Assembly (NCBI RefSeq): GCF_036365525.1
Contig: NC_090399.1
Span: forward strand, 22,082,529 to 22,146,528
DNA from: Heterodontus francisci
Taxonomy: Eukaryota
Direction of reading: 5' to 3'
DNA: 64,000 bases
Shown here: piece by piece, positions 1,768 through 55,292 of the stretch
Layout of the letters: every line of letters starts with the position of its first letter
Position numbering within the stretch: position 1 is the stretch's first letter
Made by a program: the position numbers and the translations under genes
The notes under the pieces: model-generated
What the model was told of the DNA's origin: nothing
Seen by the model: only the letters and a program-made list of their open reading frames with translations
Databases searched by the model: none

Positions 1768-1825
1768 ATGGAGCTCCAGGTCCATCTTCCGTTGCTCCTC
1801 CTCCTCCAGCTGATCAATGCAGAAG
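1768..1825 (+). CDS. Ig-5TM receptor exon 1: signal peptide MELQVHLPLLLLLQLINAE(G)
   Basis: ATG at 1768, Leu-rich h-region, donor G|GTGAG at 1826; phase 1, matching exon 2. Confidence 0.85.
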
Positions 1826-1934
1826 GTGAGGATCTCACTGGGGAAGGGGGTTAAAATGGGTAGCAGATAGTGCAGTTCCCGCAGACCCCCCCCCCCCCCC
1901 ACCCTGGAAAAGGGGTTAGAAAGTTCCCCCCCCG

Positions 1935-2200
1935 GAAATATACTTTATTTGTAACATTTTTTTTAAAACTGCATAACAGTTCAACTTGGACATTACATAA
2001 AGTGTAGTACAGATCAGTTTCTTTCAATACAGTACAGGAGGTGCCTCACTATACTTGCCATTGCTGGTTTTATTTATAATGTACATTTACATCTCCTCTC
2101 AAATATTCTCTGGTGCCTACAGCCTGAGAGGTTTTACACTGGTTTCTAGCCCCTCAGTATACTATGGCAGGAGGGCCTTCCACATTGAGTCTTTGTGGCG
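1935..2200 (-). mobile_element. Probable Tx1/L1-like LINE 3' end
   Basis: Minus strand ends ...aaataaagtatatttc and begins gccacaaagactcaatgtggaag, resembling the Tx1-clade ORF2 end and 3' UTR. Recognised from memory only. Confidence 0.4.
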
Positions 2201-2520
2201 TCTGACCTTCACGGTGTCAGAAGGACATCGGAGCAACTCAGCGGTGAAATCTCTGCTGTGACATGTTCAGGTTTAGTAATTGCTGTTGGAGAGATTCCTG
2301 GAGGTTTTGTTACGTCATCTCTGCAAATGTTGTGGCATTCACTTTATAATGTTTCAGTCTCCCTCAAGTTCAGTGTCTGCTTTTGGCTGGAGGTTTTCTT
2401 TCCCACCACTCACTGGGGTCTTTCTACCTCCCTTTCCCTGCCTCCTTCCCCACCCCACTGCACTGCCCTTCCTGAAAGGTGCTGTAGAAATGAGAATATT
2501 GTTTCGTTCTGTGTATCTGC

Positions 2521-4916
2521 GCATCAACACGAGCAGAATTTCTCACCCACAGCTGTTACAAAAATTTCTAAATTCACTTGTAACAGCCCTTCAAAACACT
2601 CCCACAGGGGATGCTGAGACCAAGTGGGCCCACATCAGAGACGCCATCTATGAGTCAGCTTTGACCACCTACGGCAAAAGTGCGAAGAGAAATGCAGACT
2701 GGTTTCAATCTCATAATGAAGAGCTGGAACCTGTCATAGCCGCTAAGCGCATTGCACTTTTGAACTACAAGAAAGCCCCCAGCGATTTAACATCCGCAGC
2801 ACTTAAAGCAGCCAGAAGTACTGCACAAAGAACAGCTAGGCGTTGCGCAAACGACTACTGGCAACACCTATGCAGTCATATTCAGCTGGCCTCAGACACC
2901 GGAAACATCAGAGGAATGTATGATGGCATGAAGAGAGCTCTTGGGCCAACCATCAAGAAGATCACCCCCCTCAAATCTAAATCGGGGGACATAATCACTG
3001 ACCAACGCAAACAGATGGACCGCTGGGTTGAGCACTACCTAGAACTGTACTCCAGGGAGAATGCTGTCACTGAGACTGCCCTCAATGCAGCCCAGCCTCT
3101 ACCAGTCATGGATGAGCTGGACATACAGCCAACCAAATCGGAACTCAGTGATGCCATTGATTCCCTAGCCAGCGGAAAAGCCCCTGGGAAGGACAGCATT
3201 ACCCCTGAAATAATCAAGAGTGCCAAGCCTGCTATACTCTCAGCACTACATGAACTGCTATGCCTGTGCTGGGACGAGGGAGCAGTACCCCAGGACATGC
3301 GCGATGCCAACATCATCACCCTCTATAAAAACAAAGGTGACCGCGGTGACTGCAACAACTACCGTGGAATCTCCCTGCTCAGCATAGTGGGGAAAGTCTT
3401 TGCTCGAGTCGCTCTGAACAGGCTCCAGAAGCTGGCCGAGCGCGTCTACCCTGAGGCACAGTGTGGCTTTCGTGCAGAGAGATCGACTATTGACATGCTG
3501 TTCTCCCTTCGTCAGATACAGGAGAAATGCCGTGAACAACAGATGCCCCTCTACATTGCTTTCATTGATCTCACCAAAGCCTTTGACCTCGTCAGCAGAC
3601 GTGGTCTCTTCAGACTACTAGAAAAGATCGGATGTCCACCAAAGCTACTAAGTATCATCACCTCATTCCATGACAATATGAAAGGCACAATTCAACATGG
3701 TGGCTCCTCATCAGAGCCCTTTCCTATCCTGAGTGGTGTGAAACAGGGCTGTGTTCTCGCACCCACACTTTTTGGGATTTTCTTCTCCCTGCTGCTTTCA
3801 CATGCGTTCAAATCCTCTGAAGAAGGAATTTTCCTCCACACAAGATCAGGGGGCAGGTTGTTCAACCTTGCCCGTCTAAGAGCGAAGTCCAAAGTACGGA
3901 AAGTCCTCATCAGAGAACTCCTCTTTGCTGACGATGCTGCTTTAACATCTCACACTGAAGAATGCCTGCAGAGTCTCATCGACAGGTTTGCGTCTGCCTG
4001 CAATGAATTTGGCCTAACCATCAGCCTCAAGAAAACGAACATCATGGGGCAGGATGTCAGAAATGCTCCATCCATCAATATTGGCGACCACGCTCTGGAA
4101 GTGGTTCAAGAGTTCACCTACCTAGGCTCAACTATCACCAGTAACCTGTCTCTAGATGCAGAAATCAACAAGCGCATGGGTAAGGCTTCCACTGCTATGT
4201 TCAGACTGGCCAAGAGAGTGTGGGAAAATGGCGCACTGACACGGAACACAAAAGTCCGAGTGTATCAGGCCTGTGTCCTCAGTACCTTGCTCTACGGCAG
4301 CGAGGCCTGGACAACGTATGCCAGCCAAGAGCGACGTCTCAATTCATTCCATCTTCGCTGCCTTCGGAGAATACTTGGCATCAGGTGGCAGGACTATATC
4401 TCCAACACAGAAGTCCTTAAAGCGGCCAACATCCCCAGCTTATACACACTACTGAGTCAGCGGCGCTTGAGATGGCTTGGCCATGTGAGCCGCATGGAAG
4501 ATGGCAGGATCCCCAAAGACACATTGTACAGCGAGCTCGCCACTGGTATCAGACCCACCGGCCGTCCATGTCTCCGTTATAAAGACGTCTGCAAACGCGA
4601 CATGAAATCGTGTGACATTGATCACAAGTCGTGGGAGTCAGTTGCCAGCATTCGCCAGAGCTGGCGGGCAGCCATAAAGACAGGGCTAAATTGTGGCGAG
4701 TCGAAGAGACTTAGTAGTTGGCAGGAAAAAAGACAGAGGCGCAAGGGGAGAGCCAACTGTGCAACAGCCCCAACAAACAAATTTCTCTGCAGCACCTGTG
4801 GAAGAGCCTGTCACTCCAGAATTGGCCTTTATAGCCACTCCAGGCGCTGCTTCACAAACCACTGACCACCTCCAGGCGCGTATCCATTGTCTCTCGAGAT
4901 AAGGAGGCCCAAAAGA
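2521..4916 (+). mobile_element. RTE-clade (BovB/Expander-like) LINE, 5'-truncated, RT ORF intact
   Basis: ORF 2280-4865 has KAPGKD, NYRGISLLS, QCGFR, FIDLTKAFD, GVKQGCVLAP, LLFADD, YLGS and a C-terminal CSTC..CHS..H..C finger, but no APE domain. Flanked by ATCTGC at 2515-2520 and 4917-4922 (candidate TSD). Confidence 0.95.
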
Positions 4917-5025
4917 ATCTGCTGGCATAACGTGTAAAATGTTTCTTCACATTTGCTGCTGAATTTCAGTGTTTGACTCACCACCACAGTTGAAATTATT
5001 AAATTTGCTTTTCTATGTCAATCAG

Positions 5026-5331
5026 GTGGAATGAAAGAAGTGTTTGGTGTCGTTGGTTCATCAGTTTTACTGGATCCTGAATATGGAGCTGATCTCAGTA
5101 ACAGTGACGTTATATGGATGTTCACTGGCAGCAGTGGAAAGCCTGTTACTATTTTGGATTATGTACCAAATCACCCAAAAGCGGAACCGAGTGAACAGTT
5201 CAAATCTCGATTATATTTTAATGTATCCGGTGGGTCTCTGATGTTAAACAGTTTAAAAGCCAGTGACCAAGGGGTTTATACCATCACTGTAGATGAAGAT
5301 TGGAAAAGGAGTAAAGATTTGAAACTCACTG
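5026..5331 (+). CDS. Ig-5TM receptor exon 2: Cys-less V-set Ig domain (CD2/SLAM/CEACAM/HEPACAM type)
   Basis: Acceptor tcaatcag|, donor G|GTAAG, phase 1-1. Encodes GVVGSSVLL, VIW, FKSRLYFNVSGGSLMLNSLKASDQGVYTITV; no cysteines. Confidence 0.93.
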
Positions 5332-5414
5332 GTAAGTGGTCAGAATACTTGGTGATGTTGGAAGTGATGCACATTTCAGCTCCTGAACTATTCACTACTG
5401 AAGAACTGCCACAG

Positions 5415-5640
5415 ATTGGGGATGGAAGCAGGCCATTCAGCCCCTCAAACCTATTCTGCCATTCCATTGAATCATGGTTGATCTGTACCTCACCTCCATT
5501 TACCTGCCTTTGTTCCTTATCCCCCACATCCATTACCCAACAGAGAAATCAATTGATCCTCAGTCTTGAAAATTTCAGTTGACCCAGCAACCACTGCCTT
5601 CGATGGTAGATTTCCACTATAAAGCGCTTCACTGATTTCA
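5415..5640 (-). mobile_element. CR1 3' tail fragment
   Basis: gcaggccattcagcccctcaaacctattctgccattc...atcatggttgatctg is the reverse complement of the CR1 3' UTR at 7870-7940. Confidence 0.6.
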
Positions 5641-6529
5641 GTGCAGAATTTGTCTTAATTCAAGATTAAATTGAACCGCTGATCCAGTAGAACAGAAATG
5701 GGGTTCATTCAGCCTCTATTGTTGAGTTCTGTCTGTCATCCTGCAGAGAAATGCCTCAGGAATTGTGATCCATCATCCATTACTGTATTGGTGAATTCTG
5801 TCCCAAACTAGATCACTGGAATTTTTTAATTGGGGAAGAGTGGTGGAGTGGACAAGCAGACAACATCAGGATTGAAGTTGAATGTCAAGTCTTGGAATTT
5901 TAGATGATAGCGAGGCTGCGAGATGTAGTTGGAATTCAGACAGTGTCTCTGGGAAAGCTGAAAAGTGAAAGATTCAAGTGATGGTTCGTACTTAGTTGCT
6001 GCTGTGACAATGATTTTCATTGGAACTGAATAGAGATCATAGCCAAATTAGGCTGATGGATTCTGCCCACACGGGGAGGGAGTGTTAGTAAGATGTCACT
6101 GGCATCAGGTTGACAGAAGAAAATGTGGAATTGCAGGGAGAGGACATTCTGCCCTGGGCTGAAAGCCAGAATGCAGGGGTTCAGTTTCTTACATCCAGTA
6201 GTTGTAGAGAAAAATCAGATCATTCTGAAAACGCCAGTGGACTAATGTGATGAATTTATTACAAAGCAAAGCGTTGGTCAGTGGAATAATTGGGTTTTGA
6301 TTCCAGCTGGTGCCCTTGAGTTCACTTCTTGTCCAGAAAAGAAAATAGCTTCATGTTAATCTTTCCAAAGATTGGAGATGCAGGTGAAGTCATGTACAGA
6401 AGACAAATAAAAATCCAGTTCAGGTTGAAGAAGATGCTGCTGTTACACCCCAGGTTATACTATCCCGCAAGTAGATATAAGACACTGAGTCAACTCTGAC
6501 AATGTAATATGCTCAGTCCCTTTTAATAT

Positions 6530-7940
6530 TGCATCGGCAGTTATCTTTCAAAATTCTGTAGATTCTGGAGAGGTTCCTGCAGAATTGGAAGTAGCAAATG
6601 TAACACCACTATTTAAGAAGGGAGGGAGAATGGAGAACTACAGACTTGATACTTTGACATCTGTAGTCGGGAAAATGTTAGAATCTATTATAAAGGATGT
6701 AATAATGGGACACTTAGAAAATAATAGTAAAATTGGGCAGAGTCAACTTGGATTTTTGAAAGGGAAATTGTGTTTGACAAACCTGTTGGAGTTTTTTTGA
6801 GGATGTTACTTGTAGCATAGATAAAGGAGAATGAGTGGATGTGGTGTATTTGGATTTTCAGAAGGCTTTAGTAAAGTCCCACACAGGAGGTTAGTAAACA
6901 GAATTAGAACACAAGGGATTGGGAGTAATATACTAGTATGGATTGAGAATTGGTTAACAGACAGAAAGCAGAGAGTAGGAATAAACGGGTCATTCTCAGG
7001 ATGGTAGGCTGTTAGTAGTGGGGTACCACAAGGATCAGTGCTTGGGCCACAGCTGTTCACAATCTATATAAATAATTTTGATGTGGGGACCAATTATAAT
7101 CTTTCCAAATTTGCTGATGACAAAACTAGGTGGGAATGTAAGTTGAGGAAGATGCAAGGAGGCTTCAGGGGGATTTGGACAGGCTAAGTGAATGGGCACG
7201 AACGTGGCAGATGGAATATGTGGGGAAAAATGTGAAGATACCCAGTTTGGTAGAAAAAACAGTATTTCTTAAATGATGAGAGGTTGGGAAGTATTGGTGT
7301 CCTTGTTCATGAGTCACTAAAAGCTAGCATACAGGTGCAGCAAGCAATTAAGGCAAATTGCTTTCGTTGCAAGGGGAATTGTATAGAGCCTTGGTGAGAC
7401 TGCACCTAGAGTACTGTGTACAGTCTTGGCCTCCTCCTCTAAGGAACGATATACTTGCCATAGAGGGAGTGCAACGGAAGTTCACCAGACTAATTCCTGG
7501 GCGGGATTGTCTTATGAGGAGAGATTGAGGAAACTGGGCCTGTATTGTCTAGAGTTTCAAAGAATGAGAGGTGACCTCATTGAAACCTACAAAATTCTTA
7601 CAGGATGTCACAGGCTGGATGTGGATAGGATGTTTCTCTGTCTGGTGTGTCTAGAACCAGGGGACATAGTCTCAGTATAAGGGGTAGGCCTTTTAATACT
7701 GAGATGAGGAGGAATTTCTTTAATCAGAGGGCGGTGAATCTTTGGAATTCTGTACCCCAGAGGGCAGGAGCTCCATCATTGAGCATGTTCAAGATAGAAA
7801 TTGATAGATTTCAGGAGACTAATGACATCAAGGGACATTGAGATAATGTAGGAAAGCGCCTTGAGGTTTATGATCGGCCCTGATCTAATTGAATGGTGGA
7901 GCAGGCTTGACAGGCTGCATGGCCTACTCCTATTCCTAAT
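6530..7940 (+). mobile_element. CR1 (HER1-like) LINE ORF2/3' fragment, decayed
   Basis: Fragments [36 protein letters not shown] and MRGDLIETYKIL, broken by stops and frameshifts; CR1 tail present. Confidence 0.9.
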
Positions 7941-8089
7941 AACTTAAAATTGATGTCAGTGGCCTATCACTAACCTCCCTAACCAAAGGAAATGGTCCAT
8001 CGTCATTTTTGTTCAACAAAACTCTTGGCAAAATCTCTGCCTTTTTTGTGGGGAAAATCCCAGCCTCCCATATCTGTCCTGCTTTATTC

Positions 8090-8330
8090 TTGCTTTATTC
8101 ATTGCTATGATGTGATGTTGCTGTCAAAGCCAGTATGTATTACTCATCCCTAGTTGACCTGACTGAGTGAGTGACTTGTTCAGCCACTTCAGAGGACAGT
8201 TTGGTCAACGACAATGGGTACAGATATATTGTTTCTTTCTGTGAAGACTATTAGTGAGCATATGTCATGGTGGGATTTAAACTCGTGGCCTCTGAGTTTC
8301 TAGTTCAGTAACATAATCACGACATTACCA
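8090..8330 (-). mobile_element. tRNA-derived SINE remnant (same family as 24205-24570)
   Basis: catggtgggatttaaactc...ctagttcagtaacataatcac is the reverse complement of that SINE's head; the LINE-type tail is at the left end. Confidence 0.45.
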
Positions 8331-8547
8331 TACACATTATTGATTCTGTATCTAGATTGTCCACTCTCCATGGTTTAAATGTCCTTTCTGTAATGGGGTG
8401 TCCAATACTGCACAGGTTACTCTATAGTCTACTCATTGCCTTGTACAAGCTAATCGGGACCTCTTTGCTGTTCCTGCTTTTTTTTATTCTGCGCCTTTAT
8501 TTATGTGACCCAAAATACTATTGACATTTTTTTTAATGGCTTTACCT

Positions 8548-9760: not shown

Positions 9761-9876
9761 TTCTGAGGTGCCTATGAAGGACAGGGCTCTTGTTTGTTAA
9801 TTATATTAACAGAATGTGAAACATTGATCTCCTCATGCTCAGACCTGTTTATCTATTCATTCATTATCTCCCACAG

Positions 9877-10146
9877 AACCACTGTCAGACCCTTTGATCT
9901 TCAGTAATTCTACTTGTGTGGAGACCACTATTGAACTGACTTGTCAAGTGTCTGCGGGGAAAGTGCATTCCGTTCTGTGGAGAAAAGGTGACGAAGTGAT
10001 AACAAATGGCCAACATTATCAGTTAGTACAAAAGGACAACAAATTGATCATTTCTAAAGCCAGAAAATCAGACTGTGGGATCTACACTTGTACCGTGGAG
10101 AACGCTGTTAGCAAGAAGAACAGTTCATATTCTCTTTCTATTTACG
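9877..10146 (+). CDS. Ig-5TM receptor exon 3: C2/I-set Ig domain
   Basis: Acceptor ctcccacag|, donor G|GTGAG, phase 1-1. Encodes EPLSDP, IELTCQV, VLWRKG, LIISKARKSDCGIYTCTVENAVS; N-glycosylation sequons NST and NSS. Confidence 0.95.
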
Positions 10147-10651
10147 GTGAGTTAATCCAGTCAGTCAATTCCATTTATTAGATAAAAATGATATTCCACT
10201 GAAGGGCCTTGCACTCAGCCTCATTAAATATGTTAATGTGGGAATAACATTGAATATTTTCATGGCAGAGGAAAGGAGAAGGATGGAAAATCACAGACTG
10301 GTAGTGTGAAGTTTTCTAATTTACACTCCTGGCTTTTACTGGGAGTGCCGAAGTGGAAAATCACGCATTAAGTTCACAGACTTGTTCAGAATGCAGACGG
10401 GTTGCCCAATGTGGGAAATGGAACACTGGTGCAGTATGATACACTTTTCTAATCATGGAGTCGAGGTATATAGTTGGGGCAGAATGGAGAGTACTGGTGG
10501 GGGTGCTTGAAAGTAGCATCGGGTGCCTGGTGGGAAGTGTTCTATAAACAAGACCTTTGATAACCAAACTTTTAAAGGAATGAAGATCCTGTTTCCAATC
10601 TGCAATTTGGTTTGAAAATAGTATAAATATGAAACCAGTTTTCTATTTCAG

Positions 10652-10765
10652 GTCTTCCATGGCTGCATCGTTGCGCAATGGGATTATCCATTGCTGCACT
10701 GATTACTGCTGCTGCTGCCTTGATCTGTACAATAATTTCATTCTTGCCTGAGGCCAAAACAATAA
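10652..10765 (+). CDS. Ig-5TM receptor exon 4: TM1
   Basis: Acceptor ttctatttcag|, donor A|GTAAG, phase 1-1. Encodes GLPWLHRCAMGLSIAALITAAAALICTIISFLPEAKTI. Confidence 0.9.
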
Positions 10766-10934
10766 GTAAGAGAAATTTGTTTCTTGCACAATTTAGCTTT
10801 GAAAGTTTTAAAATGTTACAATATAATACAGACTCTGTGAAACATTTCAATGTGATGCCTGTTAGCATTTTCAATTCTGGTGCTTTGTGCGGAGTGATAA
10901 ATTTGAATGCGTGAATATAATTTGCTCAAGTAAG

Positions 10935-11230
10935 GATAGAAAATGCTGGCAGTACTCAGCAGGTCGGGCAGCATCTATGGAGAGAAACAGAGTTAATGTT
11001 TCAGGTTGATGACTTTGCATCAGAACTGGGAAAAGTTAGAAATGTAATAGGTTTTGAGGGGGATGGATGTTGGGGAAGAACAAAAGCAAAGTTCGGTGAT
11101 AGGGTGGAAGACAGGAAAGATTAAATGACAGAAGAGTTAGTTATGCAGGGTCAAAGGGAGTGATGATTGGGCAAGAAAAGAAACAAAAGGTGTGCCTAGA
11201 ACAGGTGTGCTACTGTCTGACAGCAAAAAC
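10935..11230 (-). mobile_element. Penelope-like element 3' UTR fragment (older subfamily)
   Basis: aaaatgctggcagtactcagcaggtcgggcagcatctatggagagaaacagagttaatgtttcaggttgatgac is a reverse-complement PLE tail. Confidence 0.7.
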
Positions 11231-11351
11231 AAGAGAAAAATTGAAACGCAGAAAAGGAAGCAAAATGGAGCAGAAAATGCTAGAAATACTCAGCAGGTCT
11301 GGCCTTGTATTTGCTCAATTAATGTTGATATGAATTTGTTTATTGTTCTAG

Positions 11352-11435
11352 ATCTTCAGTTAACTGAAAATGTATTACAAGTCTTGCATCTTATCCTCCT
11401 TATTGCTGCATTTGTATGTTGGATACAGATTGAAG
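11352..11435 (+). CDS. Ig-5TM receptor exon 5: TM2
   Basis: Acceptor tattgttctag|, donor G|GTACT, phase 1-1. Encodes NLQLTENVLQVLHLILLIAAFVCWIQIE. Confidence 0.8.
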
Positions 11436-12772
11436 GTACTGTATGTTGGTAATTGTATTCCTACAAAACAGTACTTCTGACATGCGTTAATCTGGAATTT
11501 AGTGTTACTAGGCAAAGAACTTGCGTGAGTTCTAATCTTACTTTGTCAAACTGTGAATTTAAATTCAATAAGTTGCCAATTCGAGAGCTGGCATCAGAAA
11601 ATGTACAGTTTATTGTAACAACCCAACTAGTTCACTAAGGTTGGGAATTTCCTCAGAGCTGCTCCCATTGACTGTCATAACTTCATCATACTTCCAAATA
11701 AGTTGGAATTAGCTATAATGAATAATGTCCGTCCATTCATCCTTTTGTCTTCTGACACTAGCAATCCTTGCCAAACGTGTGCATTTGACCGGTCCATCTG
11801 CATCAACCCTCTTTGGCTCATTTTCTGCCCTTCTGAACAGCTAAGCTCACAGCTCTGCACATTCTGCCAGTCTGGCTGTGCTTCTTGCTGGCCCTTCATC
11901 AAATATGGTCAGCAGCTTCTTGTAATCCTTCTACAATTCATATTCAAACTCATTTCTCTGCAGGGTGCACACAAGCTGAGCAGCCGGGGTCTCCAGGACA
12001 TTGCACCTGCTAAATGTGGCACTGCCATGGTATCCCCATGTCTTCAGACCCTCATGATCTCCAGAGTTTGCAAACTCCGTTCATAACCACTATTTTAGGG
12101 TCAAGAGGTTTCCCCTGAATTCCTATTGGATTTATTCGTGATTATCTTATATTTACAATCCCTAGTTTTAGTCTCCTGCACAAGTGGAAACATCTTTGCT
12201 GCCCTGTCAAAGATTTGCAGGCTTTCTCAGTTTTGGTATAATTCTTGTGAATCTCATTAGTATCTTCACCAATGCTTCTATCGTTTTTATAATATGGAGA
12301 GATGAACAGTACTTTGTGTGGTCTAACTGATGTTTGATACATAACTTTACAGCTTTTCAATACTATTCCTCCAGAAATGGAGCACAGTGCACTTTATTTA
12401 ATGGCCTTATTAACCTGCATCACAACTTTGTGTGTCTGTAACCCCAATCATTTTGCTCCACTACCCCATTTATTTCCCAAGCAGTATGTGGTCTCCTTAT
12501 TCTTCCTACCAAAATGAAGTGGCTTGCTATGTACTCTTCCCCCTGTTTTCTGAATCAACATGCTCTGACCTTAATCATCTACCTGATAGAATATTTGAAT
12601 TTTTGAAAGACCTTTTATCTACAGCATTACCTTTGATGTGTCATGCAAGCCACCACAAATGTATTCTTGTGGTCTTGCTTTGAGAGACACAGTGGAGAAT
12701 TAAATAGCACTGGCATTGATTCTCTATTCTATGAATGTGTGTAATTTTAGTCTCATTTTGTTCTTTTCATAG

Positions 12773-12889
12773 GAGCTGCTGAAATCATGGTGTACTTGGT
12801 GTTTTTGTGTCCCCTGCTAACATTACCCATATTATCGACTTGCACAATAAAATTCTGTGACAACAAAAGGTTAAATAATACGACCAAAT
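12773..12889 (+). CDS. Ig-5TM receptor exon 6: TM3
   Basis: Acceptor ttgttcttttcatag|, donor T|GTAAG, phase 1-1. Encodes GAAEIMVYLVFLCPLLTLPILSTCTIKFCDNKRLNNTTK. Confidence 0.82.
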
Positions 12890-13957
12890 GTAAGTTCAGA
12901 TCCGGGTTACATTTTTATATCACACTATCAAGACACTCATGATCAATGTTGTGGGGAAGGGGCTGTAAGTGGGGTGGTGAAATTAGGAGTCTGAGGGGGG
13001 TGCGCTGGGAGGGAGGGAGGGAGTTGAGAGGGTGGCAAGGCAATGTGTTTGATATAATAGTTCAAATTTGAACCTGCTGCGTTTCCAGTAAATCTTAGGG
13101 AGTGGGCAGAGAAAAATGCAGTAGGGCCCAGCAGTAAGGATAGGCATGCTGCCCCTACGGTTTCTTTAGGGGCTACTTTTATTTCTCTTAAAAGCTCAGC
13201 GGAGGTTGCAGGTCACATACTCACCTTGCATTTTGCATATTTTACAGAAGGATCCTAAAAGAGGTGCTGGATCCGTTCTTTGTCTTGAGTTGATCAAATG
13301 TTGATTGCAGGACCAGAGAGGACCAATACAATGGTGGCCGTGCCACCAGAAGCACATTGGGTGCAGGGCAAGATGCCCAGAAATTAGTTTCTCGTGCGCC
13401 CAAGTTCTACCCCAATTTTTCCGAATAACTTCTGCTAAATGTGGCCCATACCATGTGCTAGAATGTCCAATCAGTCTCACTGTTGCAAATGGATCTGATA
13501 CTCCTGCTTTGAGTCATTAGTCAGATCAGCCTGTGGTTATCTGGAGAATTAGACTGCTGCTGCTCAAATTTCATTGCTAGGCAGACATCACTACTGCCCG
13601 TCCTCAATATACCAATGAAGTCCCATAACCCCCTCCCCCATATGTTCCTGCTGCTGGGACTATTGGATCACCTGAGCACAGCAAATACAGGTGAATTCAG
13701 GCAGAGAGGAGCACACATTCATAAGCAAGGCCACTTTACTTTCTATTTGATTGTAATTGGATAGAATATCTGGCAGACTGTTAGGGGGAATGTACTGCTG
13801 CCAGCCTGATTTTCCTATATATGCACACTCGGGTGATCCACAAATCTTTTCTTGACCTGTTGCATTCCCCAAAGGCACAGCAGGAGGTAGATAGGTCAGG
13901 ATTTGTGTGTGTTTGTGACCTGTGTGCACTTTTTGATTCTGTTTTATTTGTTGCCAG

Positions 13958-14056
13958 TTTGCCATCCAAAGCTAATGGCTGCAGCATCTGCATTGGGTGA
14001 AATCATTGTGATATATGTGTCGGGCGTCCTGATTGTGGAAATAAAGAAGCAAGCTG
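13958..14056 (+). CDS. Ig-5TM receptor exon 7: TM4
   Basis: Acceptor ttatttgttgccag|, donor G|GTGAG, phase 1-1. Encodes FCHPKLMAAASALGEIIVIYVSGVLIVEIKKQA. Confidence 0.8.
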
Positions 14057-14496
14057 GTGAGTGTTCAATGATAAAATTGTAGCTAATAAATCAATTCTGA
14101 AAGTTACATCCTTTCAGGAATAGTGTGATTAGGAGAGCTAATTACACAGTCATTTGTGTTCCAACGTTTTCGTTGGGAACGTTCAAATTATTGAAGTTTA
14201 CAGTGTAGGAGGAGGCCATTTGGCCCATTGTGTCTGTGCCACCTCTTTTGCTAGACTGATCCAAATCTAATGCCTCTGCTCTCCTCTCATAACCCTGTGT
14301 CGCCTTTTGCCTCAAATATTTATCCAATTTTCTCTTGGATAAAGTGAATGGTTCCCATTTTGAACACTCCCTGTGGCAAAGCATTCTATAGTTCAAAAAC
14401 CCCATATGAAGAAAACTCTCCTAAACTGTCTTTTTACGCAAGTGGCAGCTTTAAAGTGATGACACAAGATTACACAGAATATGCACTACAGAAATA

Positions 14497-17001
14497 AGCT
14501 GTTTGACCAAACCAGTCTATGCCAGCATTTAAGGTCCACTCGAACCTCCTCCCCATCCTCCAGGGTTGTAATCTCGGGATTACTCCCTGTGCCACGTGCC
14601 AGTGAGGCTTGAAATAGGAAGATAATGCAGCTAAACACGTGGCTGAGCAGCTGGTGTAGAAGGGAAGGTTTCAGATATCTGGACCATTGGGCTCTCTTCA
14701 GGGACAGATCGGACCTGTACAAGAAGGACGGGTTACATCTAAACTGGAAGGACACTAATATCCTGGCTGCGAGGTTTGCTAGCGTCACTCGGGAGGGTTT
14801 AAACTAGTGTGGCGGGGGGTGGGAACCAGAGCAGTAGGACAGCTAGTGAAATAAATGAGGAGGACATAGTAAATAAGGCCAGTAGACTAAGAGAAACAGC
14901 AGGCAGGGAGATGTTGCTGAGCACAGCGGGACTGGTGGTCTGAAGTGCATTTGTTTCAATGCGAGAAGTATAACAAGGAAGGCAGATGAACTTGGAGCTT
15001 GGATTAGTACTTGGAAATATGATGTTGTTGCTATTACAGAGACTTGGTTGAGGGAAGGGCAGGATTGGCAGCTAAATGCTTCAGGCGGGATAGAGGGGGA
15101 TGTAAAAGGGGTGGGGGAGTTGCATTACTGGTTAAGGAGAATATCACAGCTGTAATGCGGGAGGACACCTCAGAGGGGTCATGCAGCGAGGCAATATGGG
15201 TGGAGCTCAGGAATAGGAAGGGTGCAGTCATGATGTTGGGGGTTTACTACAGGCCTCCCAAAAGCCAGCGGGAGGTAGAGGAGCAGATATGTAGACAGAT
15301 TTTGGAAAGATGTAAAGGTAACAGGGTTGTGGTGGTGGGTGATTTTAACTTCCCGTTTATTGACTGGGACTCACTTAGTGCTAGGGGCTTGGATGGGGCA
15401 GAATTTGTGAGGAGCATCCAGGAGGGCTTCTTGAAACAGAATGTAGATAGTCCAACAAGGGATGGGGCCATTCTGGACCTGGTATTGGGGAATGAGCCCG
15501 GCCAGGTGGTCTAAGTTTCAGTGGGGGAGCATTTCGGGAGCAGTGACCATAATTCCATAAGTTTTAAGGTACTTGTGGATAAGGATAAGAGTAGTCCTCG
15601 GGTGAAGGTGCTAAATTGGGGGAAGGCTAATTATAACAATATTAGGCAGGAACTGCAGAATTTAGATTGGGGGTGGCTGTTTGAGGGTAAATCAACATCT
15701 GACATGTGGGAGTCTTTCAAACGTCAGCTGATTAGAATCCAGGACCAGCATGTTCCTGTGAGGAAGAAAGACAAGTTTGGCAAGTTTCGGGAAGCTTGGA
15801 TAACACGAGATATTGTGAGCCGAGTCAAAAAGAAAAAGGAAGCATTTGTAAGGGCTGGAAGGCTAGGAACAGATGAAGCACTTGAATATAAAGACAGTAG
15901 GAAGGAACTTAAGCAAGGAGTCAGGAGGGCTAAAAGGGGTCATGAAAAGTCATTGGCAAACAGGATTAAAGAAAACCCCAAGGCTTTTTATACGTATATA
16001 AAGAGCAAGAGGGTAACCAGGGAAAGGGTTGGCCCACTCAAGGACGAGATGGGAATCTATGTGTGGAGCCAGAGGAAATGGGCGAGGTGCTAAATGAGTA
16101 CTTTGCATCAGTATTCACCAAAGAGAAGGACTTGGTGGATGATGAGCCTAGGGAAGGGAGTGCAGATAGTCTCAGTCATCTCATTATCAAAAAGGAGGAG
16201 GTGTTGGGTGTCTTGCAAAGCATTAAGGTAGATAAGTCCCCAGGGCCTGATGGGATCTACGCTAGAATACTGAGGGAGGCAAGGGACGAAATTGCTGGGG
16301 CCTTGACAGAAATCTTTGCATGCTCATTGGCTACAGGTGAGGTCCCAGAGGACTGGAGAATAGCCAATGGAACTTTAGTTAGGCCACACTTAGAATATTG
16401 TGTGCAATTCTGGTTGCCACACTACCAGAAGGACGTGGAGGCTTTGGAGAGGGTACAGAGGAGGTTTACCAGGATGTTGCCTGGTCTGGAGGGCATTAGC
16501 TATGAGGAGAGGTTGGAAAAACTCGAATTGTTTTCACTAACGATGGAGGTGGAGGGGCGACATGATAGAGGTTTACAAAGTTATGAGCGGCATGGACAGA
16601 GTGGATAATTAGAAGCTTTTTCCCAGGGTGGAAGAGTCAGTTACTAGGGGACATAGGTTTAAGGTGCGAGGGGCAAAGTTTAGAGGGGATGTGCGAGGCA
16701 AGAGTTTTTTTACACAGAGGGTGGTGGGTGCCTGGAACATGCTGCCAGAGGAGGTGGTGGAAGCAGATACGATAGTGACGTTTAAGAGACATCTTGACAA
16801 ATTTATGAATAGGAAGGGAATAGAGGGATATGGGCACTGCAAGTGCAGAAGGTGTTAGTTTAGGCAGGCATCAAGATCGGCGCAGGCTTGGAGTGCCGAA
16901 TGGCCTGTTCCTGTGCTGTACTGTTCTTTGTTCATCTAACGAGCTGTTTGACCAAACAAGTCTATGTTAGCATTTAAGCTCCACTCGAACCTCCTCCCCA
17001 T
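14497..17001 (+). repeat. 60-bp direct repeat (14497-14556 and 16942-17001) bracketing a CR1
   Basis: agctgtttgaccaaac(c/a)agtctatg(cc/tt)agcatttaag(g/c)tccactcgaacctcctccccat; 56 of 60 positions identical by eye. Confidence 0.9.
14562..16933 (+). mobile_element. CR1 LINE: ORF1 esterase end plus ORF2 endonuclease, RT core internally deleted
   Basis: ORF1 reads WCRREGFRYLDHW..DGLHLN. APE motifs GVYYRPP, VVVGDFNFP and SDHN. ORF 16063-16608 jumps from DWRIAN straight to [13 protein letters not shown] at about 16369. CR1 tail present. Confidence 0.92.
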
Positions 17002-20370: not shown

Positions 20371-21066
20371 ATGCTTTTTTCTTTTGAAGTGTGATGGACA
20401 TGAAATGTCTACTGAGGTTTCAGCTTCGCTGCTCCTCACCACCCTGGAAACAAACCTTGGGAATTTCTGTACCAAATGTCCATAGTTTTCAATGATTGGA
20501 AATCTGGGACAGGAAATACACAATTTTATGATGCATGCTCCCAGCTGTGCCCGGAGCCCAAAGTGCTAAAGCCCAATGTCCTGGCCAGTCACCTTTTATA
20601 ATAAAGGAGATGCACATCATGCCAAATGTACTGGAGGTGATATAAGCTGTAAAGGTTGGAAGCCAAGGATTTCTAGTGATGGTGATATGACCAAGAGGCC
20701 CTGAATAAGGGTACAGTTAATTTTTCTAATGACCTGTGTCTTGTATACAAGTCAAAGAATATACATTGCATCATATTTATTGTACTCATTTTGAATATAT
20801 TATCATGAGTCGTTCAACTAATGTGCTGATATGCAGTTGGCACTCGCTGCCTGCAAGGGTGGTGGAAGCAATGATGACGAATAATTTCAAAAGGAAATTG
20901 GATGGGCAGTTGAAGGAAATAGACTTACTGGGCTACGGGGATACAGTGAGGGAATGGGACTGATTGGGCGGCTCTACAGAGAGCTGGCATGGATTCAGTA
21001 GGCTGAATGGCCGTCTTCTGTGCTGTAATGACCAACACTATGACTTTTTGCTGATATCGATTGCAG

Positions 21067-21159
21067 ATAAAGGATGTGAACCAACAGTCAATCTACAATC
21101 AAGTATAATTCCTGCTGTGGTGGTTCCGCCATTCGTTTTCTTTGCAGTTTTCATCGTAT
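21067..21159 (+). CDS. Ig-5TM receptor exon 8: outer loop Cys plus TM5
   Basis: Acceptor tcgattgcag|, donor T|GTAAG, phase 1-1. Encodes DKGCEPTVNLQSSIIPAVVVPPFVFFAVFIV. Confidence 0.82.
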
Positions 21160-22009
21160 GTAAGTATTGATGATGCAGTTCCAGGTTGTTTCAAAACCGT
21201 TGTAATGGATACAAAGTGCTGTGGGAAGGAGCTGTGACTGACTGAGATTTTCCACTTCACTCACTCCTGGTGACCACTGGGAGTGTAGATTGGGAAATTC
21301 TGTACCTCCAGCCCATGACTATGCAATCACTAATTTTTACTGGGTAAGATCAATTACAACCTGGAAGTGTGGAATTTTCTGATATTGTTTGGTTTGTCCC
21401 AGGAATGCTGAAGTGGGAAATCCTGGCCAAAATTCTTCATTCTTGCATTTATTGTCGGGATTTTTGTTAAATGTGTGAAAGGACTCCATTTTCAGGACTG
21501 GCAGTTTGACACATTGGAGCTCTGATTATACTTTGGGTATTTGTCAGCTGGGGGAGTGTTAGTTTAAGGTCTGCACTAGATATTCTCTTTGGTCCAGTGT
21601 CACCAGGCTCCTTTTGTAAATAGAGGAGTTTACCTTTACTGCACAATACTGTATATAGTTTCATAGTGTGACCTGTGAGTCATAACAATAAAATCCATTC
21701 ATATGTGAACTGAATGCTTAATTTCACATATGCCACCACAAACTTCTGAAAGACCAAATGATGAACAGACTCATGCAATGAAGCCAATTATAAACTAATG
21801 GGATGGTTTATATTGCAAAAGATATGTGGCCTAGAGAATTTTAACCTATTTCATAATGCTCCTCATAACAGAAAATAATTCAAGCTCCCTGTTACCAGGG
21901 TAAATACACTTTTCTAAGAGTTGCTTCAAAACTCTTCAGATGTTCTCCTTGCTTCTTTTGTATTTATCTAGGAAAACCTTGGCAATAGAACTACGCCTGG
22001 CAGTTTTTT

Positions 22010-22700
22010 TTTTTTTTGTCTGCTCTTTCTTGGGTTGTGAGCGTCACTGGCAAGGCCAGCGTTTATAGTCCATCCCCAGTTGCCCTTGAGAAGGTGGTGG
22101 TGACAGCTGAAGTCTGTGTGGTGAAGGGGCAAACAGAATGCTGATAGGTAGGGGGTAAGAAACATAGGAGCAGGAGTAGACCATTCAACCCGTCAAGCCT
22201 GCTCCCCACCGTTCAGTTAGATCATGGCTGATCATCTACCTCAGCGCCACTTTCCTGCGCTATCCCCATATCCCCTGATGTCATTAAAGGCTTGCTTAAG
22301 AGGCCTGGGGGAGTACTCTTATACCAGGAGTTTACCACGACAACTATGAATGAAATGTGACTTCTTCCATCACTTGTGTCTTGAGAGTAGTCTGATAGGA
22401 TGGTAATTGGACAGGTTAGATTGTCCTTTTTTGTTTGTGGACAGGACATACCTGGGAAAGACTCCACGCTATTGGGTAGATGCCAGTATTGGAATAGCTT
22501 AGCTAGAGACATAGCTAGTTCTGGAACATGGGTCTTCAGCACTGTAGCTAGGATGTTGCCGAAGCCCCATAGCCTTTGTCGTGCTCAGTGCACTCACGTG
22601 GAGAGAACTGAATTGGCTGAAAACTGCCATCTGTGATGCCGGGACCTCGGGAAGAGGCAGTGAAGGGACATCTTCTCGACATTTCTGGCTGAAGATGTCT
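22010..22700 (-). mobile_element. Fragments of the LINE family seen at 41250-42715, with an inserted CR1 tail (about 22160-22290)
   Basis: gtcactggcaaggccagcgtttat..catccccagttgcccttgagaaggtggtggtg is the reverse complement of that LINE's tail; ORF reads LKTHVPELAMSLAKLFQY. Confidence 0.65.
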
Positions 22701-23081
22701 CCTAAACTTGCAATTTCTAAATTGGTTCCAACCTGATCCATGTCATTGGCATCCCAAGCCTGAAGGTACTACATGTCAGGGGGATTTAGTATGATTGCAT
22801 AGACTCTGGTAGATGAGGTTTCAGCTGCTTTGACTATGGTTTGAATCTCTTATTTTTAAAGTGTTGGATATGTTTATTTCTAAAATCACTTCAAGTCCGC
22901 TAATACACTGATGGTATTCTGGCATTTTATTAATAGGTACATAGAGTACAAGAAAAAATATTAAATTAGTACAGGACAATGGTTAGGCCACATTGAGAGC
23001 ACTGTATATAGTTTTAGGTGCACTATTGTAGAAAGGACATTAAAGCTATAGAAAGCAGGCAATCTAGATTTTTTTTTTAAA

Positions 23082-23391
23082 ATTTATTTTATTTAGAAAT
23101 ACAGCACTGAAACAGGCCCTTCGGCCCACCGAGTCTGTGCCGACCAACAACCACCCATTTATATTAACCCTACAGTAATCCCATAACCTACCTACACTAA
23201 AGTTAATTGGACATTGTAAATTGCCCCATCAACCTGCAAGTCTTTGGCTGTGGGAGGAAACCGGAGCACCCGGAGGGAACCCACGCGGTCACAGAGAACT
23301 TGCAAATTCTGCACAGGCAGTACCCAGAATCGAACCCGGATCCCTGGAGCTGTGAGGCTGCGGTGCTAACCACTGCGCCACTGTGCTGCCC
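23082..23391 (-). mobile_element. HE1-type V-SINE
   Basis: Reverse complement of the SINE at 18353 and 26937, with head and tail present. Confidence 0.9.
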
Positions 23392-24204
23392 AAAAAGATG
23401 GCAGGAATTAAAAACCACAATTAAAAGGAAAGATTTGGAATATTGGAGTTATTTTGTGTTGGAATAACAAAGTCTAAAAGGACATTTTAAAAGGTTTTTA
23501 AAATGGGTTTTGATAGTGAATAGGGAATGTTGGGAATCGGTGAGATGAAAGATGTCTTTACTGAGGGTTCAAGCATGGAATGCTTTGCAACAAGGAATGG
23601 CTGAGGCAGGGACCATTGCATCTTTTAAAGGCAGAATAGAGGAATATTCGAATCAGAGGGAAATGCAGGGCAGTGGTATTAATTTTGAATTGCTGCAAAC
23701 ACCAGCCTTCTCCTGTGCTGTGAACGAATGGTCCTCCTAAAGAATTTTCAACCATCATTACTTGGATAAGAGGAACCGGTGTCAGTGGTAATGTCAGTTA
23801 CCTCATACCCTACATGGGTACCAGTGATGTAGACCACTAATATTACTTGGTCATTGAGGAGAAAGAAATGGGAGAAGCTATAACTGGAAGAGGGATCTAA
23901 ATGGTTATTCATCGATTATGTATATTAAATTTGGGTTAACTCCATTTAGCAACATTCTAAAATTATTTGGAATGAAGGTGATGTGGTAAATTATACTCCC
24001 TATGGTAAGTATTGCACTTTTCTTTGCCATCATCTCTTGAGCCACTATAATACTCACTATTATAGAGTAATCATCGAGTAACTTGTTTTGTTATCAGGAT
24101 GTGGGTGTTGGCATGGTTATATTTATTGTCCATTCCGAGTTGCTCTGAGAAGGTAATGGGCCTCTTTCTTAACCCTCTGCCATCTTTGTGGTGATGTTAA
24201 GCAA

Positions 24205-24570
24205 GGGGAGGCTGTGGCGTAGCGGTAATGTCACTAGACTAGTAATCTAGAGCCCAGGCTAATGCACTGGGGACATGGGTTCGAATCCCAGCATGTCAGA
24301 TGGTGAAATTTGAATTCAATTAATGAATCTGGAATTAAAAGCTCATCTAATGGTGACCATGACGCCATTGTTGTAAAAATCCATCTGGTTCACTAATGTT
24401 GGAAGGAAATCTGCCATGCTTACCTGGTCTGGTCTACATGAGTCCAGACCCACAGCAATGTGGTTGACTCTTAACCCTCTGAAATGGCCTGGCAAGCCAC
24501 TCCATTTAAGGGCAATTGGGGATGGGCAAAAAGTGCTGGCCGAGTCAACAACGCCCACGTCCCACAATAA
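24205..24570 (+). mobile_element. tRNA-derived SINE sharing its 3' tail with the 41250-42715 LINE
   Basis: Box A-like tggcgtagcgg, box B-like ggttcgaatcc, and 3' end aagggcaattggggatgggcaaaaagtgctggc..acgcccacgtccc. Confidence 0.8.
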
Positions 24571-25109
24571 AACAACAAATGAAGAAAATACGTCCAGGAC
24601 ATAGAGCTGTAACAATGAAAGAATCACCTGGAGAGGAAGTTGGAAGCAACGGCCCTCCAATTGTATTGCTACTCTTGTCCTTTTCAGGGGAGTGAGTTGC
24701 TGTTGTACACTGTAGACCACTCATTGCGCAATTGCAGCGTGCTGGTGATGGAGAAACTGGATCCCAAATCCAGTGACAAGAACATATCTGAGGAACTGCT
24801 CCTTTTGTGGATGATGTTGAACTGTAGTGTTGTGGTTTCATCCATTTCAGGCAACTGAGTATTCCATCAAACTCCTGATTTGAGTCTTGTAAATGGTGAA
24901 GAGGGGTTGAGGGGCCAGACAGTGGGTCTCTCGTCACAGAGCATCCATCCTGTGTCCTGCTGGAGTAACCATGGTGCTGATATGGTTCATCCAGTTGAGC
25001 AGTGGTGACTTCCAAGATGGTGATGTTGGGGGACTCGGTGGTGATGGTGCTGCTGGAAGGTCAGAGAAATTTCACCACTTCATGTTCGAGTATGTTCATT
25101 ATTCGACAG

Positions 25110-25630
25110 CAACAAAACTTTTTATACAGTGCCTTTAATGTAATAAAATGCCCCAAGGCACTTCACAGGAGCTTTATAAAGCAAACTTTGATTTGAAGCT
25201 AGAAAAGGAGATACCGGGACAGATGACCAAAAGCTTGGTCAAAGAGGTGGTATTTAAGGACTGTCTTAAAGGATGAAAGAGAGGGAGAGAAGTTTAGGGA
25301 AGGATTTGTAGAGCTTAGGGCCTTGGCAGCTGAAGACATGGGCACCAATGGTGGAGCAATTAAAATCCGGGATGGTCAAGAGAAAAGCCAGGATTAGAGG
25401 AGCGCAGATATCTCGGGTGAAAGGCGGTTGTGTGGCTGGAGGAGATTGCACGGGTAGAGTGGGGCAAGGCCATGGAGGGATTTGAAAACCAGGATGAAAG
25501 TTTTACGTTAAGGCTTTGCTGGACTGAGAACCAATGTAGGCCTGTAAGCACAGGGATGGTAGGTGAATGGAACTTGGTGTGAATTAGGACACAAGCAGTA
25601 GAGTTTTGGATGACCTCAAGTCAGCACAGG
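25110..25630 (-). mobile_element. L2-type LINE 3' fragment
   Basis: L2 tail plus VLTGLHW..QQ..VKL in the minus ORF. Confidence 0.7.
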
Positions 25631-25639
25631 GTAAAATAT

Positions 25640-25739
25640 CAGATAAAAACAAGAAATGCTGGAACTACTCAACAGGTCTGGCAGCATCTGTGGAAAGAGA
25701 AGCAGAGTTAACGTTTCGGGTCAGTGACCCTTCTTCAGA
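25640..25739 (-). mobile_element. Solo Penelope 3' terminus beginning at the hammerhead motif
   Basis: Minus strand reads CTGAAGAAGGGTCACTGACCCGAAACGTTAACT...gatgctgccagacctgttgag. Confidence 0.8.
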
Positions 25740-26369
25740 GGTCAGCCATGATTTCAGTGGAATACTCCCAGTCTCATGGTAACAAAGGTACTTATTCAGC
25801 AATTACATGGCAGAGGTAAACCTGCCACTCATCAGCCCAGCCTGGAAGTTGTTCAGGCCTTGCAATAAACTGGCATAGGCTGCTTTTATTATTAGTTATG
25901 AAGGGAGCTGAATAGAGTGAATCAGTGATTTTAGATTACATTTTGTTTAGCTGCTCCCATAGCCTACCTTCTGAGTGTTACATAATTTGGTAGAAACATT
26001 TTTGTTGCAACTTATTTATCATCTTAGATGATCAGTCAGCCACCTTGGATTTTTCTTACCAAACTCCCTTCTTTTGACTGGCCCGTTCCTGTTTGTCAAT
26101 TATAAAATAGTCAGTTGACCTGAGACTGAAGGACAATGTCCGAAGTGTCATTTCAAACCCTTAAGTCTAACATCTCTGTGGAAATTGCTTTCAGAGACAT
26201 TAAAATAAGCAGGTCAGTGGACAAGGGAGTTTCATATGAGCTGTTAAACTTTGGTATGCTGCACGGTAACATTTGAAGGAGAAAGAGCTTACAGACTGAT
26301 ATTCTAATCATCCATTTTTCTTGGTTCCTTTTTGCATCAGTTTAACTCGTGGTACGTTCAGATCAACAG

Positions 26370-26449
26370 GTACAATAAGGAAAAAATGGAGAGCCAGCAC
26401 TCTGTCTGCATATCCCAGTGTAAAAGATCCTGATGAACATCATTGTCCT
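26370..26449 (+). CDS. Ig-5TM receptor exon 9: stop-transfer segment and ITIM-like tail
   Basis: Acceptor atcaacag| (alternative AGs end at 26340 and 26361), donor |GTAAG, phase 1-0. Encodes CTIRKKWRASTLSAYPSVKDPDEHHCP. Confidence 0.65.
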
Positions 26450-26936
26450 GTAAGTGTTGGGATCAAATACAGGTGACAGGCTAAAAATACAGCTGTTGTT
26501 GTGAACCTTTCTGTAACTGAATATTCCTGCCATTTGCATATATTATTGTAGTCAGAAACGGAAGATTCCGTTTCATTTAGCTGTTCGAGAGTAATTTTTG
26601 TGGGGAATGAGAGGTTCCAGTATTTACTGAGCGAAGTGCATGAATACCATGGTGCTAACAGCAAGCAGAGATGTTTGATCCTAGTGATACATAAACGGGC
26701 TTATTTCTTGTCAGCTATATTCTGCTGAACGTTTAAAAGGGAAATGAAACAAAATCAAATCTCGTCTTGTAGACAAAATCTGCAAGACTAAATTAATATT
26801 AGCTTATTGCCAGACAGTTTGGAAATGTATTGTTTGAAAATTGCAATAAATGAACTATTGGAAAGAATCTAAATTTTTAGAAAATAAGGAATGATGTGTA
26901 TAGTGGTCTGAATTGCTGTATAAAACACCACATATA

Positions 26937-27263
26937 GGGGTGGTGCAGTGGTTAGCACTGCAGCCTCACAGCTCCAGCGACCCGGGTTCGGTTCTGGGTA
27001 TTGCCTGTGCGGAGATTGCAAGTTCTCCCTGTGACCGCGTGGGTTTTCAACAGGTGCTGCAGTTTCCTCCCACAGCCAAAGACTTGCAGGTTGATGGGTA
27101 AATAGGGCTTTGTAAATTGTCCCTGGTGTTGGTAGATGGTAGGAGAATAGTGGGGATGTGGTAGGGAATACGGGATTCATGTAGGATTAGTATAAATGGG
27201 TGGTTGTTGGTCAGCGCAGACTCGGTGGGCCGAAGGGCCTGTTTCAGTGCTGTATCTCTCTCT
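26937..27263 (+). mobile_element. HE1-type V-SINE
   Basis: Full head, V-domain and tail, as in the other copies. Confidence 0.9.
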
Positions 27264-27505
27264 ATATGTAGTGGTGTGTGGTCCACTGTAAACCTGTTTA
27301 TTAAACCTAGACACGGCAATAACTTGTTTTACAAAAAAAAACTTGACAACTAATACTCTGTGCCTAAAAGGAAAATCTCTATTGAAAGCATAATTTAAAA
27401 AAGACAAATCAAATTCATGTTACTGATCATTTTTGTATGTTTAATAAAAATATTGTCTTCTGTTTTCAGACATGTTGATTCACTTCTTTTGTCTTTTTTC
27501 TGTAG

Positions 27506-27577
27506 GAGCTGAAGGAACCATTCTTAAAAAAACACAGTTCTTCATCATTAGTAACTAACTTAAATCCAGGAGCTTAG
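27506..27577 (+). CDS. Ig-5TM receptor exon 10: C-terminus ELKEPFLKKHSSSSLVTNLNPGA*
   Basis: Strong acceptor ttttgtcttttttctgtag|, phase 0 matching the exon 9 donor; stop TAG at 27575-27577. Confidence 0.7.
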   Translation, partial: ELKEPFLKKHSSSSLVTNLNPGA

Positions 27578-55240: not shown

Positions 55241-55292
55241 GCTATTTATTGGTGCATCATTTGTTGTATCGTTCTATGATTCAATGTCAAAC

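Follow-up and report, generated by a model that had tools for sequence, protein, structure and literature searches.

A horn-shark gene for a predicted five-transmembrane, two-immunoglobulin surface protein of CD47-like layout, and its apparent family in jawed vertebrates

The window analysed here is a stretch of 64,000 nucleotides from the horn shark Heterodontus francisci (contig NC_090399.1, positions 22,082,529 to 22,146,528 of the forward strand), and it carries a ten-exon gene for a surface protein with two immunoglobulin (Ig) domains and five predicted transmembrane (TM) helices (Table 1). Translated exon by exon, the spliced exons come to 1293 nucleotides, that is 430 codons and a stop with no internal stop codon, and they run from an ATG at 1768 to a TGA at 27575-27577. 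Exons 1-9 end at GT donors and exons 2-10 begin at AG acceptors, each of which follows a pyrimidine-rich tract; introns 1-8 are in phase 1 and intron 9 is in phase 0. The original prediction of a ten-exon, phase-matched GT-AG gene with a reading frame of 430 amino acids is confirmed in its coordinates, sites and phases, and a local equality check of the concatenated exons finds the product identical, letter for letter, to RefSeq XP_067865347.1 (record P0194), which bears the name "hepatic and glial cell adhesion molecule-like isoform X1". The gene is already a RefSeq automatic prediction with four isoforms, under a name that hides its architecture.

Table 1. Exons of the horn-shark gene and selected cysteine codons, in window positions; model helices are those of the AlphaFold model of P0194
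Feature	Position	Strand	Content
Exon 1	1768-1825	+	Start codon and signal peptide (residues 1-20) with a hydrophobic, L-rich core; residues 1-19 of P0194 identical
Exon 2	5026-5331	+	N-terminal V-set Ig domain, residues 20-122, without Cys; N-glycosylation sequon at N85
Exon 3	9877-10146	+	Membrane-proximal C2/I-set Ig domain, residues 122-212
Cys codons of exon 3	9942 and 10089 (canonical); 10074-10076 (extra Cys188); 9915 (Cys135)	+	Codons checked
Exon 4	10652-10765	+	Stalk and TM helix 1, residues 212-250; hydropathy core 225-243; model helix 215-241
Exon 5	11352-11435	+	TM helix 2 and W273...E277-G278 of extracellular loop 1, residues 250-278; model helix 249-277
Exon 6	12773-12889	+	TM helix 3 and basic intracellular loop 2, residues 278-317; model helix 282-309
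Exon 7	13958-14056	+	TM helix 4, residues 317-350; model helix 320-353
Exon 8	21067-21159	+	Extracellular loop 2 and TM helix 5, residues 350-381; model helix 360-391
Cys353 codon	21075-21077	+	Exon 8, motif G-C-E-P; codon checked
Exon 9	26370-26449	+	Start of cytoplasmic tail (RKKWR...); absent from isoform X4 (P0152)
Exon 10	27506-27577	+	End of tail and stop codon; polyA-like signal at 27681

Exon searches were made one exon at a time, and full-length analyses were made on record P0194. Searching protein representatives with exon 2 returned P0004, which is 100% identical to every exon but exon 4, and exon 8 matched P0194 at 100% by tblastn. The ectodomain had been read as a V-type Ig domain lacking Cys followed by a C2-type domain, and the profiles agree: exon 2 matches the Pfam V-set family with E 5.8e-8 (33.3 bits, above the 26-bit cut-off) and encodes no Cys, and exon 3 matches the I-set family with E 4.8e-16. 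Five hydrophobic segments follow, the ones named in the original prediction, one in each of exons 4-8. Searched singly, these TM exons gave no match in Pfam, PDB-sequence or protein-atlas searches, because they are too short.

Hydropathy and two AlphaFold models predict a layout in which a signal peptide is followed by a V domain that lacks Cys, then by a C2/I-set domain and five TM helices, and the protein ends in a short tail of 47 amino acids. The N-terminus is outside the cell, as the signal peptide and the Ig domains require, and the C-terminus is inside. Basic residues had been expected after TM3 and TM5, and they are present: the TM3-TM4 loop (intracellular loop 2, residues 305-321) has four K/R and the tail opens with RKKWR; the TM2-TM3 loop is acidic. 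The expected number of helices is also borne out, in that hydropathy gives five cores, and not one or two, and both models contain five helices. In the model of P0194, built from a 41-sequence alignment, the Ig domains have a predicted local distance difference test (pLDDT) score of about 90, and the overall value is 74.9. The second model is of an owl relative, P0229, which consists of the second Ig domain and the TM domain only; folded with 107 sequences, it reaches pLDDT 87 and a predicted template modelling (pTM) score of 0.78, and its five long helices are mostly above pLDDT 90. The closest structural matches of the ectodomain are CD58, CD48, SLAMF6 and 2B4. Two proteins were also matched among the predicted viral structures of BFVD: MC002L of Molluscum contagiosum virus (451 amino acids), which aligns with the shark model over 430 columns, and UPI00001D9782, an unnamed protein of 290 amino acids, with 281 columns aligned; either might be a viral Ig-plus-multi-TM protein.

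RNA evidence comes from four public runs (X1-X4) of two studies and two organisms, considered over the region 9800-14100. The runs cover the exons and almost no unique intron sequence. Contigs join 10146/10652, 10765/11352, 11435/12773 and 12889/13958, all across GT..AG introns, and the joints are present both in organism A (three runs from one sample) and in organism B (the other study, with a few mismatches per exon). One contig of 508 nucleotides, with zero mismatches, contains the last 35 nucleotides of exon 3, exons 4, 5, 6 and 7, and 58 nucleotides more; rather than ending or splicing out after exon 4, transcripts thus carry exons 3-7 in series. The predicted splicing chain is in this way established in RNA for the joints of exons 3-4-5-6-7, and junctions 1-2, 2-3 and 7-10 rest on identity to the RefSeq model. 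Paralogue-like contigs, with eight mismatches in exon 4, also occur in the runs.

Two cysteines show coupled conservation. In addition to its canonical Cys144-Cys193 pair, the second Ig domain carries a further cysteine, Cys188, in the E-F turn (motif D-C-G-x-Y-x-C), and the TM4-TM5 loop, extracellular loop 2 (ECL2), carries Cys353. The loop residue is kept in 101 of 107 sequences and Cys188 in 96 of the 103 family sequences without a gap there. Across the 107 sequences both are present in 96 and both absent in 5, with at least three independent losses, and Cys188 is never found without Cys353; the two sequences with Cys353 only carry a replacement Cys, aligned with residue 135. From this covariation we infer a disulfide, Cys188-Cys353, that would pin the membrane-proximal Ig domain to ECL2. 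The covariation also argues that ECL2 faces outward in a five-TM protein, which is the only sensible reading of it. Extracellular loop 1 has near-invariant residues as well, W273 being kept in 99% and G278 in 97% of the 107 sequences.

Sequence comparison indicates that the gene is one member of an old, unnamed family of jawed vertebrates, with many paralogues in sharks and rays. More than 100 proteins, drawn from about 60 species, share the architecture, under the RefSeq names HEPACAM-like, CD48-like, CEACAM-like, CD276 homolog, hemicentin-like and "uncharacterized"; such names are assigned automatically from Ig-domain similarity, are uninformative on the five-TM domain, and mask one coherent family. 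Members occur in the sharks Scyliorhinus, Carcharodon, Mustelus, Cetorhinus, Chiloscyllium, Stegostoma, Hemiscyllium, Heptranchias and Pristiophorus and in the rays Hemitrygon, Mobula, Pristis, Hypanus and Amblyraja. The 74.5-Mb horn-shark scaffold of the gene carries several paralogues, only one of them within the window. The TM part of P0194 (residues 213-392) matches 56 of the 194 proteins gathered, and a word-indexed homologue search with the same residues, in which candidates are picked by shared words, returned 8 close relatives.

A TM profile built solely from sharks and rays also matched an eagle protein, and the C2 and TM region of that protein led to orthologues in all bird orders sampled (LOC422295 in chicken) and in turtles, tuatara and lizards. 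The shark-ray profile matches sauropsids across its full length, with E values down to 1e-24 in turtles and 1e-13 in birds. By these matches the family reaches beyond sharks to rays, birds, turtles, tuatara and lizards, the sauropsid groups apparently keeping one to a few genes each, and the TM domain, for whose exons 5-8 conservation in relatives had been anticipated, is conserved from sharks to birds in the more than 100 proteins. The family was not found in mammals in the searches made, of which the word-indexed ones can miss distant relatives. A quick tree of the C2 and TM region separates elasmobranchs from sauropsids with a Shimodaira-Hasegawa-like approximate likelihood-ratio test (SH-aLRT) value of 99 and contains several shark paralogue clades.

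The gene structure can also be followed across this distance. What bird isoforms leave out is exactly the stretch aligned with shark exon 5, the junction codon being changed, and the exon 3/4 and 6/7 boundaries, as read from the bird isoform alignments, coincide in shark and bird; it therefore appears that a phase-1 structure with one helix per exon is common to both. Among bird orthologues identity peaks in the TM domain, at 83%; the V domain has 71% and the tail 51%. A paralogue on the same horn-shark scaffold, P0153, has a different profile, being 90% identical to P0194 in the V domain, 85% in C2, 64% in the TM domain and 38% in the tail; this mosaic divergence points to gene conversion or an exchange of exons within the 5′ half. 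Three lizard members (P0317, P0322 and P0323) have no recognisable V domain and consist of one C2-type Ig domain and five TM helices, the same domain count as CD47. The Pfam accessions PF28321 and PF28299 are listed for some members. In the literature searched, we found no description of the family, of the chicken gene or of the architecture; the sequences themselves are known from RefSeq, as automatic predictions with misleading names.

A structural paper on CD47 presents it as the immune system's sole five-TM receptor (PMC8410850), and the shark protein resembles it in several respects. In both, an Ig ectodomain runs straight into five TM helices with the N-terminus out and the C-terminus in. 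The CD47 ectodomain is tied to ECL2 by C15-C245, a bond needed for binding of SIRP-alpha and for signalling (PMC8410850), and the shark family likewise has a conserved ECL2 Cys that is predicted to pair with a Cys of the adjoining Ig domain. Both have short tails without tyrosine motifs that derive from small alternative 3′ exons, and the TM bundle is more conserved in birds than a simple anchor would predict. The gene layouts are also comparable: shark exons 4-8 hold one TM helix each and exons 9-10 the tail, isoform X4 ending after exon 8, and in CD47 the IgV domain is in exon 2 and alternative tails arise by skipping of exons 8-13, which leaves exons 3-7 for the five-helix domain (PMC10902115). 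By analogy, each of those five CD47 exons would hold one helix. There are differences, however. CD47 has one Ig domain and the shark protein two, the distal one a Cys-less V domain of CD2 type; the Ig-side Cys is in the A strand in CD47 and in the E-F turn in the shark family; the SWF linker motif of CD47 is absent from the shark family; and only the latter is seen here to form large paralogue sets, in sharks and rays.

The ectodomain, in contrast, is of CD2/SLAM type. CD2/SLAM proteins likewise begin with a V-set domain that lacks the canonical disulfide and continue with a C2-set domain, but they are single-pass or glycosylphosphatidylinositol (GPI)-anchored, whereas the shark protein has five helices encoded by serially spliced exons. 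HEPACAM and CEACAM proteins share the V-then-C2 ectodomain and give weak sequence matches at the Ig level, yet they too are single-pass or GPI-anchored and differ from the shark protein and its conserved five-TM domain. The overall claim with which the analysis began, that a CD2/SLAM-like two-Ig ectodomain sits on a five-TM, CD47-like layout in a distinct multi-pass member of the Ig superfamily, finds support in the transcripts, the models and the conserved TM domain.

The tails also differ. SLAM receptors signal through the tyrosines of ITSMs (immunoreceptor tyrosine-based switch motifs; TxYxxV/I), whereas the shark protein has no conserved ITSM or immunoreceptor tyrosine-based inhibitory motif (ITIM). 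No ITSM is present in 60 elasmobranch or 95 sauropsid tails. The sequence S-A-Y-P-S-V in exon 9 fits the ITIM consensus, and ITIM-like motifs occur in 4 of the 60 elasmobranch tails, three of them isoforms of the horn-shark gene. The ITIM was considered as a family feature and rejected, S-A-Y-P-S-V not being conserved even in the nearest paralogue.

The explanation that we favour, by a modest degree, is that the window contains an expressed horn-shark gene for a five-pass surface glycoprotein with a type-I start, a CD47-type molecule with a CD2/SLAM-type head that belongs to an old jawed-vertebrate family. Partners of CD47 (integrin-associated protein) are SIRP-alpha, thrombospondin-1 and integrins. 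In the mechanism that we envisage for the shark protein, the distal V domain would engage a ligand borne by another cell, in the manner of CD2, CD58 and SLAM; a complex prediction for two copies of the V domain scored 0.00 and 0.00, which speaks neither for nor against binding. The Cys188-Cys353 disulfide would fix the orientation of the ectodomain on the conserved helix bundle, a part played in CD47 by C15-C245. Given the lack of a conserved tyrosine motif in the tail, signalling would be expected to pass through the helix bundle and lateral partners instead. By analogy, the best reading of the protein is as a leukocyte-type surface recognition molecule, an immune role being suggested by the modelled fold of the ectodomain. 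In these terms the protein has the build of CD47 and is probably CD47-like in its mechanics.

Whether the TM module shares ancestry with CD47 is a separate matter, and one on which we are almost evenly divided. The predicted Ig-to-ECL2 disulfide and the exon layout favour relatedness. A number of results weigh on the other side. The Pfam model of the CD47 transmembrane family, which we take to be accession PF04549, gave no match to the TM region in any of the 61 members scanned, even at E<=10. The Pfam V-set_CD47 model (PF08204) matches the second Ig domain only, in 14 of 41 members and below the cut-off, with a best E of 4.4e-4; one such match has 18.5 bits at E 0.0018 against a 21-bit cut-off. 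Neither phmmer nor the family profile returned CD47 from PDB sequences, and a protein-atlas search with residues 123-392 yielded no CD47, its results being confined to the protein's own cluster and to Ig families. Full-length CD47 (7myz_C) was found by Foldseek at rank 45 (E 2.6e-5, 280 columns) with a low TM-score of 0.23/0.26 and a root-mean-square deviation of 19 A, although no other match extended across the Ig part as well as the TM part. The best 50 VIA rows do not include CD47; Ig-only matches filled four structure searches on the two models, the VIA-align lists among them, and so the helix bundle was never compared alone. As the tests of homology failed or were undecided, we do not file the protein as a member of the CD47 family.

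These results, together with the different placement of the Ig-side Cys from C15 of CD47, are what one would expect if the five-helix module were an independent invention, a scaffold or a channel- or transporter-like unit attached to a CD2/SLAM-type receptor, with the resemblance to CD47 convergent down to the loop Cys. We regard this as a serious possibility, though clearly a less probable one than the CD47-type reading. It would require that helix number, topology and the tethering ECL2 Cys all coincide with CD47 by convergence, as would the arrangement of one TM helix per exon, which fits the five CD47 exons 3-7 if the helix-by-helix match holds, and the short, alternatively used tail exons that lack tyrosine motifs in both. 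Moreover, even the CD47-like proteins of viruses are identical to human CD47 at just seven residues (PMC8410850); with divergence of this order, a failed sequence search is weak evidence against kinship with CD47.

A more far-reaching form of the CD47-type reading, which we put forward as a speculation that is probably not correct, is that the family forms an evolutionary bridge between CD2/SLAM and CD47. An ancestor with V and C2 domains on five TM helices could have given rise to CD47 by reduction to one Ig domain and, when the exons of TM helices 1-4 dropped out, to single-pass CD2/SLAM receptors. The latter would be an easy step, because in-frame Ig-Ig-TM5 isoforms are annotated. If the bridge is real, sharks, rays, birds and reptiles would still run a second CD47-like recognition system that was lost in mammals.

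The same isoforms raise the question of whether the five-TM form is the main product at all. All TM exons are in phase 1-1, so any of them could be skipped in frame, and for the horn-shark gene RefSeq gives an isoform without exon 5 (X2) and one without exon 4 (X3, P0004), besides X4, which ends after exon 8. It could be argued that the principal product is a single-pass, CD2/SLAM-like protein (Ig-Ig-TM5-tail) or a four-TM variant, the five-TM form being minor or non-functional; Carcharodon and Cetorhinus have predicted forms of the first kind, and several birds have predicted forms that skip TM2. We consider this improbable. The contigs carry exons 4, 5, 6 and 7 in series, and no joint that skips exon 4 or exon 5 is among the contig joints listed for the four runs; the full TM domain is conserved from elasmobranchs to sauropsids, in birds above the Ig domains; and the covariation of Cys353 with the Ig Cys calls for an outward ECL2. 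A four-TM product of TM2 skipping would have an inverted topology downstream, with the loop Cys inside the cell; such skipping could serve as a regulated off-switch or be splicing noise. Annotations of it recur in sharks (P0151, P0154 and P0158) and in several birds (P0283, P0290, P0268 and P0265), and are always in frame. In P0181 and P0183 (from Carcharodon and Cetorhinus) and the cluster representative P0025, the second Ig domain continues directly into TM5 and the tail, a single-pass layout identical to that of CD2/SLAM.

Finally, an artefact of annotation or assembly that fused an Ig superfamily gene to a neighbouring multi-pass gene might be suspected from the 26-kb extent of the locus, its long, LINE (long interspersed nuclear element)-filled introns and the dependence of junctions 7-8, 8-9 and 9-10 on the RefSeq model rather than reads, but it is very hard to credit given that one zero-mismatch contig joins exon 3 (Ig) to exons 4-7 (TM helices 1-4), that over 100 proteins of about 60 species have the architecture, and that the Ig and loop cysteines covary.

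The favoured, CD47-type reading points to a second, widespread family with Ig domains on a five-helix base and, apparently, a shared Ig-to-loop disulfide tether. It makes testable the purpose of the five-helix module, which is the most conserved part in birds, as well as the origin of CD47 and the existence of further CD47-like recognition ligands in non-mammalian vertebrates. The chicken orthologue LOC422295 provides a tractable experimental model.

The window also contains remains of mobile elements. Intron 1 contains, at 2280-4865 (+), an unbroken open reading frame (ORF) of 861 amino acids with reverse-transcriptase motifs and a C-terminal Cys-rich knuckle, which looks like a young LINE copy. 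Fragments of CR1-like LINEs, with endonuclease and reverse-transcriptase pieces in shifted frames, lie at 15044-16608 (+, intron 7), 29400-32700 (-) and 37000-38200 (+), and the strongly negative GC skew of the 28-36 kb stretch (-0.33 and -0.27) fits minus-strand LINE copies. In intron 4, a short dispersed repeat at 10940-11055 and 11271-11303 reaches a summed contig depth of about 8,000-57,000 in all four RNA runs, against 5-80 for the exons; it has numerous different flanks, and some of its joints are on the opposite strand. An Rfam scan of the whole window at gathering thresholds gave no match. A GIY-YIG-type endonuclease motif (...YIGETKRRLGDRFAEH...) of the sort typical of Penelope-like elements occurs in an ORF at 43672-44418 (+) and in an ORF at 61869-62195 (+), the latter a fragment. 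The stretch 55160-56380 is a purine-rich (G/A) low-complexity tract with a pyrimidine-rich opposite strand, and it yields spurious long ORFs on both strands in which either Gly, Glu and Arg or Pro, Ser and Leu abound.

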